The translations under genes and the position numbers were made by a program. From the IMG/VR virus record IMGVR_UViG_3300032268_000832, positions 242,464-306,463 of that record: DNA of 64,000 nucleotides. One strand, 5' to 3'. Below are positions 8,791 to 46,408 of the stretch, piece by piece. Under the pieces are notes generated by a model. That model did no database searches and was not told the DNA's origin. It was given only the letters and a program-made list of their open reading frames with translations. How positions within the stretch are numbered: the first letter of the stretch is position 1; every line of letters starts with the position of its first letter.

Positions 8791-8885
8791 CTGGTAATGC
8801 GCGAGATGGTTTAAGCGGTCGGACTTGGAATCCGATGAGGGCACAAAGGTAGTGTCTTCCACAGGTTCGAATCCTGTTTACCAGA
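8791..8885 (+). tRNA. tRNA-Pro(TGG) with long variable arm (atypical)
   Basis: C1:G72 and A73; TCGGA-CTTGGAA-TCCGA; about 25-nt variable arm; ACAGG-TTCGAAT-CCTGT. Confidence 0.8.
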
Positions 8886-8913
8886 CAAGAAATACAAAAC
8901 ACAAAACAAAAAA

Positions 8914-10921: not shown

Positions 10922-11164
10922 ATGAAAACAGATATAAACATTAGCATTGATACAGAAAGCAAAACTCCAATATCAATAAACAAACCTGAGGGTGTCAACC
11001 CACCAACTACAGCTGAAGAAGCTAAAGAGGTGATTACCACAGATATAAAGTGTTTAACAGAAGCTTTGTGTTTTATGGTTGGTGTGGCTGAAGATAACGG
11101 TTATGTTAACGCTAATGAAACGTTAACACAAATAATAGTAAGATTAAATAAAGATTTAAAGTAA
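10922..11164 (+). CDS. hypothetical protein
   Basis: ATG after promoter at about 10900. Confidence 0.7.
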   Translation: MKTDINISIDTESKTPISINKPEGVNPPTTAEEAKEVITTDIKCLTEALCFMVGVAEDNGYVNANETLTQIIVRLNKDLK

Positions 11165-11577
11165 TGGAAAAGTTTAAAGGAGATAAAATAAGTGCAATAC
11201 ACTCGTTTACGGTGTTCCCACAAGACTTAAACTATGCTGACACATTGTTTGGTGGTAAGGTAATGGCTGAAATGGACGTTGCTGGTGTTAAGGTTGTTCG
11301 TAGAGCAATATATGAAACTGATTGTGATGGTGCTGTGACAGCTAGTGTTGATAAGATTGATTTTAAAAAACCAGCTTTTCTAGGTGATTTGATTACAATG
11401 AAAGCCGATATAAAAGCATTGGGTAGGTCATCAATTCAAGTTAAAATTACAGTAACTAGAGAAAGTCAACGTGGTGATATTGAAGAAATATGTGCTGCTA
11501 ATTTTACTTTTGTTACTATGAAAGATAAAAAATCTCATCATCATGATTTGAGTTTTGAGAAATTGTTAAACAAATAA
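11164..11577 (+). CDS. acyl-CoA thioesterase (HotDog fold, YciA-like)
   Basis: VFPQDLNYADTLFGGKVMAEMD, VTASVDKIDFKKP, ANFTFV. Confidence 0.92.
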   Translation: MEKFKGDKISAIHSFTVFPQDLNYADTLFGGKVMAEMDVAGVKVVRRAIYETDCDGAVTASVDKIDFKKPAFLGDLITMKADIKALGRSSIQVKITVTRESQRGDIEEICAANFTFVTMKDKKSHHHDLSFEKLLNK

Positions 11578-38143: not shown

Positions 38144-38212
38144 TAAACAGCCCGCTATAAAATAGTGGGTTTTTTTATTGTTAAAAAGAAAAAAAATAAG
38201 TATTTTTGTAAT

Positions 38213-40168
38213 ATGAATAAAGAAAATAAAATAAAAATAGGTGATGTTTTAGAAGGTAGAATAAGTGTTAACGCTAGTGGTTCAGCATATTTGACGGACC
38301 CAAATCTACCAAAAGACATTTACATACACAAATCCAACACCAACAAGGCGTTGCATTTGGATAAAGTAAAAATCCGCACCAAAGAAGGTGTTGGTAGAGC
38401 AATGGAAGGTGAAGTAATTGAAATCGTTGAACGATTCAGAACGGAATTTGTAGGTACGCTTCAAATAAGTCCTAAATTTGCATTTTTTATCCCAGACAGT
38501 AACAAATTACCAATAGACTTTTTTATACCGTTAAACTCGCTTAATAAAGCTCAAAATGGTCAAAAAGTTGTTGTTAGACTTACTGAATGGAAAGATGATG
38601 CAAAGAACCCTAATGGTGAAGTTATTCGCGTGTTGGGTGATGCTGGTGAGCACGAAACTGAGATACACAGTATACTTGAAGAATATGGATTACCATACGA
38701 TTTTGAGGAAGATGTGTTAGCAGAAGCTAGAGCGATTCCAATTGAGATAACACAAGCTGAAATTGATAAACGTAGAGATATGCGTAACGTACTTACGTTC
38801 ACCATTGACCCAGCGGATGCCAAAGATTTTGATGATGCGTTGAGCGTTGAATGGGTTGACGGTGAGCTGTTTGTTGGTATTCACATTGCTGACGTATCAC
38901 ACTACTTACGTCCAGACACAGAGTTAGACAAAGAAGCGTTTGCCAGAGGTACCAGTGTGTATTTAGTTGACAGATGCGTTCCAATGCTTCCTGAGAACTT
39001 ATCTAACGGATTGTGTAGTCTTAGACCTAACGAGGACAAATTGTGTTTCTCAGCGGTGTTTAAGTTGGACCAAAACGGTCATGTGTTGGAAGAATGGTTC
39101 GGTAGAACTGTGATAAACTCTAACCGTAGATTTACTTACGAAGAAGCACAGATGCTTATTGAAGCCAAAAAGTTACCAGAAGAATATGAAGAATATTTCC
39201 AAACAGAGGAAGGTCATGCGTTATGGAAATCTATTCTAACACTTAATAGAATAGCACAGAAAATGCGCAAAGGTCGTTCAAAGAAAGGTTCTATTTCGTT
39301 TGACAAACAAGAGGTTAAGTTCAAGTTGGATGAAAACAACAAACCAGTTGGTATTCATTTCAAGGTTGCAAAGGATTCAAATAAACTTATTGAAGAATTT
39401 ATGTTGTTGGCAAACAGACATGTTGCTCAATACATAAACAAACGAGAATTACCTAATGTAAACAGAGCGCATGATAAACCTAACGATGATAAATTAAATA
39501 ACTTAAAAGAATTTATTTCACAGTTTGGATATGAAATCCGTATTGATACACCAGAAGAAACTACAAGAACGCTTAACCAGTTGTTGTTGGACGTTAGAGG
39601 TACTGCTGAGGAAGATATGATTAACAACTTGGTTGTGAGAACAATGCAGAAAGCAAACTATACAACCAAAAACATTGGTCACTATGGACTTGGGTTCAAA
39701 GACTACAGCCACTTCACCAGTCCGATTAGACGTTATCCTGACGTTATAACACACAGACTGTTAGGGTTGTACTTGGAGAACAAACCAACGCTACCTAAGA
39801 TTGAAAAACTAGAAGCTAGATGTCAACACTTATCTGAAAGAGAAAAGAAAGCACAGAAAGCCGAAAGAGATTCAATTAAATTTATGCAGTGTGTGTATAT
39901 GAGTGAAAACGTAGGTAAAGTGTTCAAAGGAATAGTTAGTTCTGTAACGGAATACGGTATCTTTGTTGAAATTTTAGAGAACAAGTGTGAAGGACTTATC
40001 AAATTATCTGAAATACAAGGTGACACATATCAAGCTGATACTTTAAATCATTGTGTTAAGGGTTATAACACTGGTCACAAGATTAGACTTGGTGATATGG
40101 TTCATGTAATAGTTTCAAGTGTAGATATAGAAAAAAAGAACATAAATTTATCTTTGATTAACCTTTAA
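38213..40168 (+). CDS. rnr: ribonuclease R
   Basis: cold-shock domains, FTIDPADAKDFDDALS, LIEEFMLLAN, HFTSPIRRYPD, C-terminal S1. Confidence 0.96.
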   Translation: MNKENKIKIGDVLEGRISVNASGSAYLTDPNLPKDIYIHKSNTNKALHLDKVKIRTKEGVGRAMEGEVIEIVERFRTEFVGTLQISPKFAFFIPDSNKLPIDFFIPLNSLNKAQNGQKVVVRLTEWKDDAKNPNGEVIRVLGDAGEHETEIHSILEEYGLPYDFEEDVLAEARAIPIEITQAEIDKRRDMRNVLTFTIDPADAKDFDDALSVEWVDGELFVGIHIADVSHYLRPDTELDKEAFARGTSVYLVDRCVPMLPENLSNGLCSLRPNEDKLCFSAVFKLDQNGHVLEEWFGRTVINSNRRFTYEEAQMLIEAKKLPEEYEEYFQTEEGHALWKSILTLNRIAQKMRKGRSKKGSISFDKQEVKFKLDENNKPVGIHFKVAKDSNKLIEEFMLLANRHVAQYINKRELPNVNRAHDKPNDDKLNNLKEFISQFGYEIRIDTPEETTRTLNQLLLDVRGTAEEDMINNLVVRTMQKANYTTKNIGHYGLGFKDYSHFTSPIRRYPDVITHRLLGLYLENKPTLPKIEKLEARCQHLSEREKKAQKAERDSIKFMQCVYMSENVGKVFKGIVSSVTEYGIFVEILENKCEGLIKLSEIQGDTYQADTLNHCVKGYNTGHKIRLGDMVHVIVSSVDIEKKNINLSLINL

Positions 40169-42407: not shown

Positions 42408-43057
42408 TGAAGATAACTTGCATAAGTGATACACATAATCAACATTTACATATCCCACCTGATTGGTTAGAAGGTGGGGATGTGTTGGTGCATGCTGGTG
42501 ATGTATCTGGAAGAGGAACTTTGAAAGAAATCGAAGCTTTTTTAGAATGGTTCAATGAGCAACCATACACACATAAAATTTTTATAGCTGGAAATCATGA
42601 TTTCTGGTTTGAAAAAACAACTGGTTTTGTTGTTAACGAAATGTTGCAAGAAAAGTATCCTAATGTTAAATACCTAAACGATAGTGGTGTTGAAATTGAT
42701 GGTGTAAAGTTCTGGGGTTCACCTGTTCAACCATGGTTCTATGATTGGGCATTCAACAGAGTTGGTACTGATATATGTGAGCATTGGGATATGATACCGC
42801 TTGATACCGATGTGCTTATAACACACGGTCCTATGAAAGGTATTTTGGATATGACTCTTAGAGGTGTATCAACTGGCTGTCCTTATTTGTTGGAGAAGTC
42901 AGCTGAAATGACTAACCTAAAACTATTCGTGTGTGGTCACATACATGAGGCTTATGGTAAGTTTGAGTTCCCAGATGGTGGTGTGTTTGTAAATGCATCA
43001 ACACTTAATTTCAACTATAACGTACAAAATAAACCAATTGTGGTAGAAATAAAATGA
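42407..43057 (+). CDS. metallophosphoesterase
   Basis: ISDTH, HAGD, AGNHD, THGP, GHIHE. Confidence 0.93.
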   Translation: MKITCISDTHNQHLHIPPDWLEGGDVLVHAGDVSGRGTLKEIEAFLEWFNEQPYTHKIFIAGNHDFWFEKTTGFVVNEMLQEKYPNVKYLNDSGVEIDGVKFWGSPVQPWFYDWAFNRVGTDICEHWDMIPLDTDVLITHGPMKGILDMTLRGVSTGCPYLLEKSAEMTNLKLFVCGHIHEAYGKFEFPDGGVFVNASTLNFNYNVQNKPIVVEIK

Positions 43058-43338
43058 GTGAAAAGTATAAACCAATAGCAAAAGAAACAGAACAATACCA
43101 TTATTTTAGTACTGCTGAAATGATTGGTTTTATCACAACCAATTCAGGTATGGATTGGAATAAGTGTTGTGACTATGTAATCAAAGTAGGTATTTGCAAT
43201 GATGATGGTCGAAACTTATGGGATAAAGATGTTCTTAAAAACCCAAAAGATTATAACGAAGACGTTGTTAAATGGGTTGGAGCATTCTTTGAAGCTCATC
43301 CATGGGTAGAAAGATTTTATTTAATTTTTGATGATTAA
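43054..43338 (+). CDS. hypothetical protein
   Basis: ORF track. Confidence 0.7.
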   Translation: MSEKYKPIAKETEQYHYFSTAEMIGFITTNSGMDWNKCCDYVIKVGICNDDGRNLWDKDVLKNPKDYNEDVVKWVGAFFEAHPWVERFYLIFDD

Positions 43339-43401
43339 AAAAATAATCATAAAAAAATTTGACTTGAATTAAAAAAGTTAGTATATTTGCATTATAAAAT
43401 A

Positions 43402-43485
43402 GGTCAAGAGTCGCAAAAGGCGATGGAAACACATGTGGTTTCCGAGAACATAAGTCTCTTTTAGGTGAAGACCCTAATGTTGACC
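43402..43485 (+). ncRNA. candidate multi-way junction RNA
   Basis: GGTCAA/TTGACC closing four hairpins (TCGC/GCGA, GGAAAC/GTTTCC, GAGA/TCTC, TTAGG/CCTAA) right after a promoter. Confidence 0.55.
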
Positions 43486-43585
43486 GCAAGAAACCCAACA
43501 GTTAAGTCCCTAGTAATAGGAAATTGACAAAAGTGGTCTGGAACACTTTACTGCTATGGTTGACACTGGGAATAGACTAGAAAAC

Positions 43586-43684
43586 GCGAGAGTGGCGAAG
43601 TTGGTAAACGCTAAGGTTTTTAGCCAGAAGTACTATGGAACAACTAAGAACTTGGTGTCGGTGGTTCGAGCCCACCCTCTCGCA
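43586..43684 (+). ncRNA. tRNA-Leu-like RNA with extended non-canonical anticodon arm
   Basis: GCGAGAG/CTCTCGC-A, TGGCGAAGTTGGTAAACGC D arm, GGTGG-TTCGAGC-CCACC; no 7-nt anticodon loop. Confidence 0.75.
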
Positions 43685-43696
43685 CAATTAAAATAG

Positions 43697-43890
43697 AAAA
43701 CTTTCTACAGAAGACATATTAGCGATGTTGAAAGGAACCTTGGCTTCATGGGATTAGCTACCCAACCGAAGTTCGAATGCCCCAAGGTACTCTGTGATGG
43801 ACCCTGCTCTGATGTGCACGATTAACAGGTGAGAAGTAAAATATTCTCAGTAAAATCCACAACTGCGGTGAGCGTAGAGAAGGTTTTTTT
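43697..43890 (+). ncRNA. candidate structured RNA, about 190 nt
   Basis: TTCTAC/GTAGAG and ACCTTGG/CCAAGGT stems; GC-rich; no ORF. Confidence 0.45.
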
Positions 43891-43901
43891 ATTTTAGTTA
43901 T

Positions 43902-44019
43902 GGTTAGGTGGCGGAATAGTAGACGCTCGGAGGTCAAAAGATTTTGTACATAACTGCGGTAAGTGAGGATATTGACTGTTGAACACTTACAATTACAGGT
44001 TCAAGTCCTGTCCTAACCA
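43902..44019 (+). ncRNA. tRNA-like RNA with expanded anticodon/variable region
   Basis: GGTTAGG/CCTAACC-A, TGGCGGAATAGTAGACGC, ACAGG-TTCAAGT-CCTGT; about 68-nt middle with GTAAGTG/CACTTAC stem. Confidence 0.75.
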
Positions 44020-44219
44020 CAAGTCGCTTTAGGGGGTCGACCACAGACAACAGTTTGGTATAGTCACGTAAACTGGGAAAATAGAGTGGAGGGTTTTAAA
44101 TGTTTACCATAAGAACGTAAGGCTTATTATCGATGAAACGAAGTTCCTAGCGTAAAACAGAACTAAAAACTAAAAAGTAAGGACACATATGGGTGAGACT
44201 TCAAACCTAGTCCTGAAAT

Positions 44220-44295
44220 ATCCGTATAGCTCAATTGGTAGAGTATTCGGTCCGAGGGGGCCGAAAGGTTGTAGGTTCGAGTCCTACTGCGGATA
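44220..44295 (+). ncRNA. anticodon-less tRNA-like RNA (tetraloop-capped arm)
   Basis: ATCCGTA/TGCGGAT-A; TTCGGTCC-GAGG-GGGCCGAA; GTAGG-TTCGAGT-CCTAC. Confidence 0.8.
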
Positions 44296-44313
44296 CAACT
44301 AAAAGTATTGAAT

Positions 44314-45027
44314 ATGAAAATAATAGCCTTAGGTGACACGCATGGTCGTGACACATGGAAGAGTATCGTTAAAACGGAATTAGAAAGTAGCGATAAAATT
44401 ATCTTTATTGGTGATTATTTCGATAGCAGAGATGATATTGACGCTTCAGCACAAATTGAAAACTTCAAACAAATATTAGACTTAAAAAAAACGAACCCAG
44501 ATAAAATTGTGTTACTAATTGGTAATCACGATTTTCATTATTTAAAAGGGTGTGGTGAAACTTATTCAGGGTATCAGCAATATGCTGCCATGGATATTAA
44601 TGAGGTCTTACAACCAGCTTTATCTTCTGGACATATACAAATATGTTATGTTCATGATGGGTATATTTTTTCACATGCTGGTTTAACTCAAACATGGTGT
44701 GGTGAGAATGAAATTGATTTATATAACATTGAAGAATCTGTTAACATTAGGTTTATGAAAAACATGGAATCGTTCAGATTTGAATATGGTGAAAACATGG
44801 ATAGAAGTGGTGATGATGTAACTCAATCACCACTATGGGTTAGAATACCATCATTGTTAAAAGATATGGTTAAGGGGTTTACATACATTATAGGTCATAC
44901 AACTGTTAAAGAAATGTATATGGCTAATAACATTATAGCTATTGATTGTTTAGGTACAAGTGGTGAGTATTTAGTAATTCAAAATGAAACAGCTTTAGCT
45001 AGAAAAATAGTTATAGAAAAAGAATAA
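44314..45027 (+). CDS. metallophosphoesterase
   Basis: GDTHG, GDYFD, GNHD, SHAG, GHT. Confidence 0.92.
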   Translation: MKIIALGDTHGRDTWKSIVKTELESSDKIIFIGDYFDSRDDIDASAQIENFKQILDLKKTNPDKIVLLIGNHDFHYLKGCGETYSGYQQYAAMDINEVLQPALSSGHIQICYVHDGYIFSHAGLTQTWCGENEIDLYNIEESVNIRFMKNMESFRFEYGENMDRSGDDVTQSPLWVRIPSLLKDMVKGFTYIIGHTTVKEMYMANNIIAIDCLGTSGEYLVIQNETALARKIVIEKE

Positions 45028-45032
45028 TAAAA

Positions 45033-45491
45033 ATGAAAAATTTAATAACAAACCGTAAGGCTTATTATGAATATCATATTTCAGAAACTCTGTCATGTGG
45101 TATTCAATTAAATGGTTCTGAAATAAGACCAATAAAAGAATCAAAGACATCTATAAACGAAGCTTACTGTTACATATCAGAAGGTGAACTTTTCATCAAA
45201 GGGATGTATGTTGCACCACATAATGGTAACATTAAGAACTATACACATGATACCAATAGAGATAGAAAATTATTGGTTAAAAAAATTGAAATTGAAAGAC
45301 TTCAACAAAAGGTTGGTGAGAAAGGGATGACGATTGTTCCAGTTTCTATCGTATTAAATGATAAAGGTTTAATAAAAATAATCATTGGTTTGGCTAAGGG
45401 TAAAAACGTGAGGGACAAATCTGTAGCTATTAAACTTAAAGATTTAGATAGAGATATGAAAAAAAATATTAAAAATAATTTTGGAGAATAA
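45033..45491 (+). CDS. smpB: SsrA-binding protein
   Basis: NRKAYYEY, GIQLNGSEI, RDRKLL, GMTIVP, GLAKGK. Confidence 0.95.
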   Translation: MKNLITNRKAYYEYHISETLSCGIQLNGSEIRPIKESKTSINEAYCYISEGELFIKGMYVAPHNGNIKNYTHDTNRDRKLLVKKIEIERLQQKVGEKGMTIVPVSIVLNDKGLIKIIIGLAKGKNVRDKSVAIKLKDLDRDMKKNIKNNFGE

Positions 45492-45535
45492 AAAATAAGT
45501 ATTATATTTGCCACATAAATTTAAAATTACAAAAA

Positions 45536-46408
45536 ATGAGAGCATTAAAAATCAACAAAAAAATTACTAGTAGAGAAAATTCGTCTTTCATTCAATATAT
45601 GAGAGAGGTTAACGAGATTCCTTTACTTACACCTGCACAAGAAACTGAATTGGCTGAAAAAGCGGTAAATGGTGATAAATTAGCAGCTGAAGAATTAGTT
45701 GTTAAAAATTTACGTTTCGTTATTTCAGTAGCTAAACAATACGCAACTGACAAAATTTCCTTGGAAGATTTGGTAAATGAAGGTAACATTGGTCTTATCA
45801 AAGCTGTTGAAAAGTTTGATATCACTAAGGGTTATAAATTTATTTCATTCGCTGTATGGTGGGTTAGAAAATTAATGATGGAATATGTTTCTAATTATGG
45901 GAAAACTGTTCGTATCCCAGCCAATCGAATCAATGAAATGTCAAAATTAAATAAATACATTTCAGCTGTAGAACAAAAAAATTGTCATAAAGTTGATATT
46001 GAAGAAATTATTTCTGAATTTCCAACTGAATTTGCTTCAGATGATTTTGTTTTATTGGATAGTTTAAGTAATTTTAAAGTGGATTCTTTAGACCGTGAGA
46101 TTCATTCAGATGAAGGGAATAGTACGTCAGTGTCTGATTTAATGTTTGACGAAAATGCTGATGATACTGATTATTTATTAGGTAAGTCTGATATTAAATC
46201 AGAAATCAACGCTGCTTTATCTACTCTTAAACCAAGAAACAAACAAATAATGGAAATGTTGTTTGGTCTTAATGGTTATCCAGCAATGACACTTCAAGAA
46301 GTTGGTGATGAAATCGGTTTAACTAGAGAGATGATAAGACAAGTAAAGGAAAAATCACTTAAACTAATGAGTAAAAATAAAAGGATTCAATTAGTGGCTC
46401 AAAGTTAG
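45536..46408 (+). CDS. RNA polymerase sigma70 factor (Bacteroidota primary-sigma-like)
   Basis: NLRFVISVAKQY, DLVNEGNIGLIKAVEKFD, FISFAVWW, TLQEVG..LTREMIRQ; no region 1.1. Confidence 0.95.
   Translation: MRALKINKKITSRENSSFIQYMREVNEIPLLTPAQETELAEKAVNGDKLAAEELVVKNLRFVISVAKQYATDKISLEDLVNEGNIGLIKAVEKFDITKGYKFISFAVWWVRKLMMEYVSNYGKTVRIPANRINEMSKLNKYISAVEQKNCHKVDIEEIISEFPTEFASDDFVLLDSLSNFKVDSLDREIHSDEGNSTSVSDLMFDENADDTDYLLGKSDIKSEINAALSTLKPRNKQIMEMLFGLNGYPAMTLQEVGDEIGLTREMIRQVKEKSLKLMSKNKRIQLVAQS

Follow-up and report, generated by a model that had tools for sequence, protein, structure and literature searches.

The stretch of DNA analysed here, hereafter called the window, comprises the last 64 kb of the 306,463-bp IMG/VR virus record IMGVR_UViG_3300032268_000832. 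The source genome (coded G000) has a GC content of 31% and a CheckV completeness of 86%, and belongs to a jumbo phage found in lake-water metagenomes. On the + strand, genes for RNase R (38165-40168), two proteins of unknown function, a phosphoesterase and a 94-aa ORF are followed by 970 nt free of ORFs, then by genes for a second phosphoesterase (44314-45027), SmpB (45033-45491) and a sigma-70 family protein, also on the + strand. The ORF-free region ends with the object of this study, a tRNA body with a closed anticodon arm that we call a blank tRNA and of which the window holds two copies. A megablast search with positions 43000-46000 of the window against deposited phage genomes gave no match. 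Among the neighbouring proteins, one of 266 aa gave no usable match, and one of 406 aa was rejected as a candidate ligase because it resembles a viral glycosyltransferase-like protein. The phage possesses a trans-translation kit of its own, made up of the above RNase R and SmpB and of a true tmRNA (G000:194292-194645, 72.4 bits) located approximately 92 kb away from smpB. The features considered below are the following:

1849-1965, + strand: YrlA-like (Y RNA-like) element; Rfam YrlA full model, 36 bits, E 5.9e-6, below the gathering score of 69
1969-2044, + strand: blank tRNA copy 1; UUCG-capped 8-bp arm, G3.U70, A73; Rfam tRNA 54.2 bits
43358-43389, + strand: promoter-like site TTTG-N20-TATATTTG of Bacteroidota type, predicted to open the unit
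43586-43684, + strand: tRNA-like A; tRNA body whose anticodon loop region carries 28 inserted nt, missed by ARAGORN
43686-43901, + strand: segment 2; 216 nt, holds the freshwater-1 motif, closed cycle in two RNA runs
43902-44019, + strand: tRNA-like B; tRNA body with 64 nt replacing the anticodon arm, missed by ARAGORN
44021-44219, + strand: segment 3; non-coding, between tRNA-like B and the blank tRNA, covered by RNA-run contigs
44220-44295, + strand: blank tRNA copy 2; full cloverleaf, Rfam tRNA 57.5 bits
44297-44313, + strand: 17-nt spacer from C74 to the phosphoesterase ATG, identical in all copy-2 orthologues
44314-45491, + strand: calcineurin-like phosphoesterase (44314-45027) and SmpB (45033-45491), downstream, within the predicted transcription unit of the blank tRNA

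Copy 2 reads ATCCGTA-TA-GCTC-AATTGGTA-GAGT-A-TTCGGTCC-GAGG-GGGCCGAA-AGGTT-GTAGG-TTCGAGT-CCTAC-TGCGGAT-A. Its acceptor stem (44220-44226/44288-44294, ATCCGTA/TGCGGAT) has 7 bp, including A1:U72 and one U.G pair, and is followed by U8 and A9. The D arm (44229-44244) consists of a 4-bp stem and of the D loop AATTGGTA, which contains the GG of the elbow; the variable loop AGGTT occupies positions 44266-44270 and the T arm GTAGG-TTCGAGT-CCTAC positions 44271-44287; A73 lies at 44295 and is followed by an encoded C74 at 44296. Between the D arm and the variable loop, a canonical 5-bp anticodon stem and 7-nt loop with U33 and a three-base anticodon is replaced by a closed arm of 20 nt, in which TTCGGTCC (44246-44253) pairs with GGGCCGAA (44258-44265) over 8 bp, seven of them Watson-Crick pairs and one U.G, around the tetraloop GAGG (44254-44257). 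Folded alone, this arm gives a hairpin of 7-8 bp with an energy of -12.7 kcal/mol. The features listed in a preliminary description of positions 44220-44295, namely an 8-bp arm, a 4-nt loop, AGGTT, A1:U72 and A73, are thus all present. The nucleotides engaged in tertiary contacts in tRNAs (U8, A14, G18G19 and the GTTCRA T loop) are found together with the cloverleaf, in columns that are invariant in the six-sequence alignment discussed below. The Rfam tRNA model (RF00005) matches copy 2 with 57.5 bits over model positions 1-71, treating the loop region as an insertion, and ARAGORN reports a tRNA-??? with a four-base 'anticodon' gagg and no amino acid. No U33 is found in any register, and copy 2 cannot decode. 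It also lacks a G3.U70 pair (C3:G70 is present instead), a long variable arm and a G-1, and has no alanine identity.

The twin announced 42 kb away in the preliminary description, copy 1, is located 42.25 kb upstream of copy 2, with the arm CTCGGTGG-TTCG-CTGCCGAG. As an alternative, ARAGORN reads copy 1 as a tRNA-Ala(cgc) with a 3-nt 'intron', that is, once 3 nt are removed; since G3.U70 and A73 are kept, copy 1 probably descends from a tRNA-Ala whose loop became closed by the insertion of 3 nt. Copy 1 stands at the end of a non-coding unit which has its promoter -7 box at 1147 and contains a tRNA-Phe (1306-1378); the next promoter, at 2080-2110, stands ahead of a gene at 2137. A YrlA-like element ends 3 nt upstream of copy 1. 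It is a circularly permuted tRNA-like in which a T arm, a capped acceptor and a D arm are closed together by a long terminal helix, a topology that fits YrlA and Y RNAs at a sub-threshold score. This RNA is conserved in the related loci L200, L206 and L210, and the phage has no Ro/TROVE gene. Both copies of the blank tRNA therefore directly follow a conserved non-coding RNA, segment 3 in the case of copy 2 and the YrlA-like RNA in that of copy 1. A segmental duplication of a 'tRNA-like plus downstream gene' was also considered and found to be unsupported, the proteins encoded downstream matching different families or none.

Because few relatives of the phage are present in IMG/VR, orthologues were located through the neighbouring proteins. 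Copy 2 is found at the same syntenic place, 18 nt ahead of the phosphoesterase ATG, in L180, L183 and L187. Compared with the window, the L187 copy differs at 6 of the 14 acceptor positions (ATTCACA/TGTGAGT), all seven pairs being kept, and at 3 of the 10 positions of the T stem (GCGGG/CCTGC), and it carries GAAA, a GNRA tetraloop, in place of GAGG; none of the 16 positions of the arm stem has changed. In L183 one G:C pair of the arm has become G.U. Orthologues of copy 1 were found in L206, L200 and L103. The arm of the L206 copy, ATTGGTGG-TTCG-CTGCCGAT, shows a change of its first pair from C:G to A:U and of its third from C:G to U.G, and the L200 and L103 copies have an arm of 28 nt capped by GAAA or GCAA. 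G3.U70 and A73 are retained in all four copy-1 variants. Alignment of six sequences of 76 nt reveals that every one of the 144 pair cells (100%) holds a standard pair, compared with 86.8% in shuffles, and that pairing falls to 42-51% when the partner columns are slid by 1-3. Nine of the 24 pairs change on both sides, among them three of the eight in the closed arm. Compensatory changes occur in the acceptor, in the arm and in the T stem, and no pair is broken in the six variants; the loss of pairing without compensation that characterizes a tRNA pseudogene is not seen.

The preliminary description had proposed that the abnormal geometry is kept by selection rather than by decay. Selection on the shape is supported by these comparisons, since the orthologues keep every pair through compensatory changes while the loop goes from GAGG to GAAA. 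As judged from the alignments, the conserved feature is an intact tRNA body with a closed, anticodon-less arm; the exact geometry of 8 bp and 4 nt, assumed to be common to the copies, varies, as the 28-nt arms of two copy-1 orthologues demonstrate. Indeed, the anticodon region bears no sign of a decoding constraint, its loops being GAGG, GAAA or UUCG and, in the two longer arms, GAAA or GCAA. A search for covariation in the three pairs that extend the anticodon stem had also been suggested. Two-sided changes are found at 33:40 and 34:39, where they separate the paralogues only and so count as one event each in this small sample of six sequences; the third pair, U32.G41, is invariant. A covariance model of the family, suggested as a further check, finds exactly two sites in the 306-kb genome, at 98-99 bits. 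The best ordinary tRNA scores 58.5 bits. A match by chance can thus be discounted, and the model applied to 42 further loci retrieved no new family member between 93 and 71 bits. Copy 2 is missing from L186 and L189-L196 and copy 1 from L202 and L210; the blank tRNA is therefore dispensable. In L202, copy 1 has been removed by a deletion running from T arm to T arm, and in L210 the YrlA-like RNA is present without copy 1.

We further analyzed the organization of the region upstream of copy 2. The window contains 21 copies of the Bacteroidota-type motif TTTG-N17-22-TAnnTTTG on its + strand and 5 on its - strand, a frequency that suggests a Bacteroidota host. One such site lies at 43358-43389, the next at 45480-45510, and a motif scan of the window found none between 43389 and 45480. 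A single unit is thus predicted, comprising the promoter, segment 1, tRNA-like A, segment 2, tRNA-like B, segment 3, the blank tRNA, the phosphoesterase and smpB, of which the blank tRNA would be the last RNA module. In relatives without the blank tRNA, the phosphoesterase gene has its own promoter directly ahead of it. Three further copies of the roughly 30 nt at 43370-43399 are present in the source contig, two of them exact and one with 3 differences.

The two sister tRNA-likes of the unit, which have no anticodon either, are more remote from ordinary tRNAs than copy 2, with Rfam tRNA scores of 41.5 and 36.1 bits versus 57.5 bits. With introns allowed, ARAGORN reads tRNA-like A as a 'tta' tRNA with a 23-nt intron. 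Segment 2, enclosed by the two, contains the orphan Rfam motif freshwater-1 (43793-43855, 70.6 bits; gathering score 72), and its termini are self-complementary over about 20 pairs in the minimum-energy fold, a pairing that would hold its ends together. The first 165 nt or so of segment 3 (44021-44185) are about 90% conserved with respect to L187, more than the acceptor stem of the adjacent blank tRNA, whereas conservation is lost in the last 45 nt ahead of the blank tRNA. No ORF and no Rfam match were found in 44021-44185, and the folding energy of segment 3 is unexceptional (z = +0.4); the segment may be another non-coding RNA. Downstream of the blank tRNA, the 17-nt spacer is predicted to be a short mRNA leader left by processing at the 3' end of the tRNA-like. 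At the DNA level, the order and content of the modules differ between strains (run X25), and the cluster has the appearance of a hot spot of recombination formed by tRNA-like ends. Many variants of tRNA-like B with different inserts are seen in the relatives L007, L187 and L189. In L180-L185 a gene for a GIY-YIG homing endonuclease (about 2000-2800) lies beside the non-coding RNA cluster. L007 is a more distant phage (SmpB 48% identical), in which a GOLLD RNA (326.8 bits) and a tmRNA flank smpB, the sites around smpB being L007:9489-9902 and 11119-11516, with many odd tRNA-likes nearby.

Parts of the copy-2 locus were found in six metatranscriptome runs from lakes and rivers, where the evidence consists of assembled contigs from mixed strains. 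In two of these, X17 and X19, the deepest contig has 246 nt and a depth of 64-74, and its first 30 letters are identical to its last 30, so that it represents a closed cycle of 216 nt, linearised at different points in the two runs. The joint connects 43901 to 43686 without ambiguity. Position 43901 is the base preceding G1 of tRNA-like B, which is the RNase P site, and 43686 is the base following A73-C74 of tRNA-like A. A third run, X15, contains a cycle of 335 nt (43686-44020 within a 5-nt ambiguity) that ends at C74 of tRNA-like B. Both the 5' end (43901|43902) and the 3' end (after C74, 44020) of tRNA-like B hence coincide with joints of circular RNAs. Such joints are absent from the DNA runs: the source run X1 gives one collinear 59-kb contig, and the contigs of the lake run X2 are collinear as well. 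The contigs of the RNA runs have a depth of 30-74 on the non-coding segments versus 2-3.5 on the downstream coding region, a contrast that fits processing followed by different stability. On copy 2 itself the depth of these contigs is almost nil, standard RNA libraries being known to under-sample tRNAs; among them, no joint was found at the ends of copy 2 and no cycle of segment 3. A tandem DNA repeat carried by some unseen strain is a conceivable but improbable source of the cycles, as two distinct repeats would be required, each delimited precisely by sites of tRNA processing. In the simplest reading, the tRNA-likes would be cut as tRNAs are, the spacer would be released with a 5'-phosphate and a 3'-hydroxyl, and a ligase would close it. 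Among the 38 tRNA genes of the phage, 29 have T at -1 and 34 have C74 followed by a base other than C, and the tRNA-likes, the two blank tRNAs with their U(-1) included, are built likewise. Moreover, the phage encodes a CCA-adding enzyme and RNA ligases of Rnl1 and Rnl2 type (G000:203801, 216038, 221285), and has no RtcB. Ligases of these two types join the 5'-phosphate and 3'-hydroxyl ends left by RNase P and RNase Z.

Taken together, we give an even chance to the reading in which the blank tRNA is a non-decoding processing handle that sets the ends of the neighbouring RNAs. Its starting points are the shape of the module, the compensatory conservation of this shape, its place in the operon and the processing that occurs exactly at the ends of the sister tRNA-likes; that copy 2 is cut as tRNA-likes A and B are, and that being cut is its main purpose, we infer by analogy. 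One long precursor containing the blank tRNA would be transcribed from the promoter at 43358-43389 through smpB, and the tRNA-maturation enzymes of the host would recognise the intact stack of acceptor and T arm and the elbow formed by the D and T loops. Cleavage by RNase P at 44219|44220 would provide segment 3 with a precise 3'-OH end, and a 3' processing activity cutting after C74 (44296|44297) would free the phosphoesterase-smpB mRNA with its 17-nt leader. The sealed hairpin would keep the module out of translation and give it a compact, nuclease-resistant fold. Copy 1, located 3 nt downstream of the YrlA-like RNA, would act likewise, the RNase P cut at its 5' end setting the 3' end of that RNA. 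The completeness of a tRNA body that nevertheless has no anticodon counts in favour of this model, as does the location of the blank tRNA, within one transcript, between RNAs that need defined ends; Y RNAs are known to require them. Since copy 2 has neither G3.U70 nor a long variable arm nor G-1, a function common to both copies is unlikely to need aminoacylation. The situation in L210 and L202 indicates that the handle would be useful and not indispensable. On the other hand, the closed arm is more conserved than a pure handle for RNase P and RNase Z needs (no change among 16 positions with respect to L187, and an invariant U.G), which hints at an additional ligand or role, and it also speaks against the model that many relatives do without the blank tRNA, that segment 3 gave no cycle and that an ordinary tRNA could serve equally well as a handle.

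This excess conservation of the arm is the strongest argument for the main alternative reading, in which the matured, CCA-added blank tRNA acts alone in trans, as a mimic of tRNA. Indeed, the arm stem with its U.G wobble is better conserved than the acceptor stem, as would be expected of a recognised surface. The mimic could carry an aminoacyl group for a reaction outside the ribosome, in which case copy 1 would be charged by AlaRS on the strength of its G3.U70 and A73. Alternatively, it could act as a decoy or sponge for host proteins binding the tRNA body, for example EF-Tu, modification enzymes, or toxins and defence nucleases that target tRNAs. In both cases neither the ribosome nor anticodon nucleases would see it. 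The presence of G3.U70 and A73 in all four copy-1 variants, the descent from tRNA-Ala suggested by the Ala(cgc) reading of ARAGORN, the CCA-adding enzyme of the phage and the occurrence of closed-arm tRNA bodies in unrelated metagenomic and viral contigs agree with such a role. However, copy 2 carries no known set of identity elements that act independently of the anticodon, and its orthologues differ from one another at pairs 2:71 and 3:70; the blank tRNA is absent from many close relatives, no partner protein came to light, and copy 2 has almost no depth in the RNA-run contigs, a point softened by the under-sampling of tRNAs in standard libraries. We consider a trans-acting mimic unlikely, while keeping it in view. 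Improbable, in our judgement, is a purely structural role, in which the tRNA fold would stay attached and uncut and would block 3'-to-5' exonucleases, the RNase R of the phage included, or lend stability to the downstream mRNA at its 5' end. An uncut cap would suit the position of each copy as the final RNA module of its array, the RNase R gene 4 kb upstream, and the fact that no intrinsic terminator was noted after either copy on reading the sequence by eye. Such a cap does not agree with the cutting of the sister tRNA-likes of the same transcript at their tRNA ends, nor with the higher tRNA score of copy 2 (57.5 versus 41.5 and 36.1 bits).

At a locus that is recombinogenic, with the deletion in L202, the varying order of the modules and the homing endonuclease genes beside the cluster in relatives, one might imagine a tRNA pseudogene in decay, or a neutral sequence generated as the numerous tRNA genes recombine. 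The absence of any broken pair in six variants, the compensatory changes, the invariance of the nucleotides of the tertiary contacts and the exchange of the loop for a stable tetraloop make this explanation very improbable. We find it scarcely credible that the blank tRNA is an unusual decoding tRNA, be it a quadruplet or expanded-loop suppressor (5 bp and a 10-nt loop), a tRNA interrupted by a mini-intron of 3 nt, or a minimal tmRNA-like molecule that works with SmpB. These ideas derive from the ARAGORN output, a four-base anticodon and, for copy 1, Ala(cgc) with a 3-nt 'intron', and from the presence of smpB 740 nt downstream. A quadruplet suppressor has an open loop of 8-9 nt with U33, whereas the ten central bases of the blank tRNA are self-complementary and form three further pairs and a tetraloop; as these bases pair and covary, with 33:40 and 34:39 changed on both sides and 32:41 always U.G, an expanded-loop suppressor does not fit, and copy 2 has no U33 in any register. 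Introns of 3 nt are not known from bacterial tRNA genes, whose introns belong to group I. A role as SmpB partner or mini-tmRNA was rejected because the real tmRNA of the phage, with its 72.4 bits, is encoded elsewhere in the genome (G000:194292-194645) and because copy 2 has C3:G70; ARAGORN detects no tmRNA at copy 2. In place of the tRNA-like domain of a tmRNA, copy 2 has a 4-bp D stem and a closed arm of 20 nt, and a full anticodon stem would fill the space that SmpB occupies on tmRNA.

Returning to the processing handle, its logic comes closest to that of mascRNA and of tRNA punctuation, and the chemistry of the circles to that of tRNA intronic circular RNAs, with other cut sites and another class of ligase. 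mascRNA and its MEN-beta counterpart, at the 3' ends of MALAT1 and NEAT1 in vertebrates, resemble the blank tRNA in being tRNA-shaped, in having no meaningful anticodon loop and in following a non-coding RNA immediately. In that system RNase P cleaves at the 5' end of the element, which creates the mature 3' terminus of the RNA upstream, and the small RNA itself is completed by RNase Z and the CCA-adding enzyme. Here, by contrast, a phage and not a eukaryote is concerned, the tRNA body is near-perfect with a sealed 8-bp arm and a tetraloop, and an mRNA follows; the neighbouring released RNA appears to be circular, whereas theirs ends in a triple helix, and cleavage at copy 2 is proposed by analogy. 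In tRNA punctuation, as seen in mitochondria, in tRNA-flanked small RNAs and in synthetic tRNA-guide-RNA arrays, tRNA shapes likewise alternate with other RNAs in one transcript, and RNase P and RNase Z release the pieces; the likeness extends to the circle joints, which fall exactly at 5' and 3' ends of tRNA-likes. In our case, however, the two ends of at least one excised piece appear to be ligated to each other, and the marks are non-decoding, so that they appear to be dedicated to processing. Ligase-made circles such as the tRNA intronic circular RNAs also result from tRNA-processing cuts followed by the action of an RNA ligase, with the difference that the circle here is the spacer between two tRNA-likes and not an intron, and that the expected 5'-P/3'-OH ends suit the ATP-dependent Rnl-type ligases encoded by the phage and not RtcB, which it lacks.

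Mimicry of tRNA without decoding is also a property of the tRNA-like domain of YrlA, but the topology is opposite: in YrlA the acceptor is capped, entry is through the 'anticodon' stem and the 5' and 3' ends form a long terminal helix, whereas the blank tRNA has an open acceptor and a capped anticodon arm and therefore does not belong to the YrlA or Y RNAs. With the tRNA-like domain of tmRNA the blank tRNA shares the quality of an anticodon-less mimic and a nearby smpB gene; tmRNA, however, has no D and anticodon stems and carries G3.U70 and, linked to its acceptor strands by a long helix, an mRNA-like domain with a tag reading frame, and copy 2 has none of these traits.

Searches of IMG/VR with a fixed-spacing pattern for the 20-nt arm recovered this lineage only, apart from two unrelated cases with 7 bp and a 6-nt loop; patterns built on the 3' end of either copy recovered only near-identical copies and the known orthologue in the genome coded G001. 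Among the metagenome matches listed, ordinary tRNAs and apparent intron-bearing tRNA-Asn genes were set aside. Closed-arm tRNA bodies of other sequence are found in unrelated metagenomic and viral contigs with GC contents of 0.29-0.67. Because such bodies occur in unrelated contigs, the class may be broad. The searchable literature yielded no account of phage tRNA bodies with a tetraloop cap, and none in which freshwater-1 is a circular RNA.

The tRNA genes of phages are usually regarded as codon-usage helpers or as answers to anticodon nucleases. A tRNA body that has lost decoding and is maintained by selection would add a second use of the tRNA shape in phages, as a transferable mark that directs RNase P and the enzymes of 3' processing to an RNA. 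Should the processing model be correct, it would explain how a single promoter yields several small structured RNAs in jumbo phages; freshwater-1 would acquire a molecular form, the 216-nt circle, and engineered tRNA-flanked RNA arrays would have a natural counterpart. We tentatively propose, with confidence clearly short of even, that the blank tRNAs may be the dedicated excision handles of a phage RNA factory, in which RNase P and the 3' tRNA-processing activity of the host would cut, the Rnl-type ligases of the phage would close the circles and freshwater-1 would be a circle resistant to the phage-encoded RNase R. This would be the first natural tRNA-flanked production line for circular RNA described in a bacterial virus. 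As for annotation, a 'tRNA-???' with an odd anticodon can be a functional non-decoding RNA and not an error or a pseudogene.

Other unusual tRNAs are present elsewhere in the phage. Two have CTA and TCA anticodons, of amber and opal suppressor type (G000:199106-199179 and 239866-239941); the large ORFs of the window are open under table 11, and no recoding is therefore claimed. Long variable arms characterize a second set of tRNAs, 82-96 nt in length, whose anticodons are those for Met, Ile, Asn, Cys, Val and Pro (positions 8791-8886 of the window; G000:196385, 210106, 210605, 238139 and 238635). A body with a long variable arm is normally found only in Leu, Ser and Tyr tRNAs, and each of these long-arm tRNAs has an isoacceptor of normal length elsewhere in the genome.
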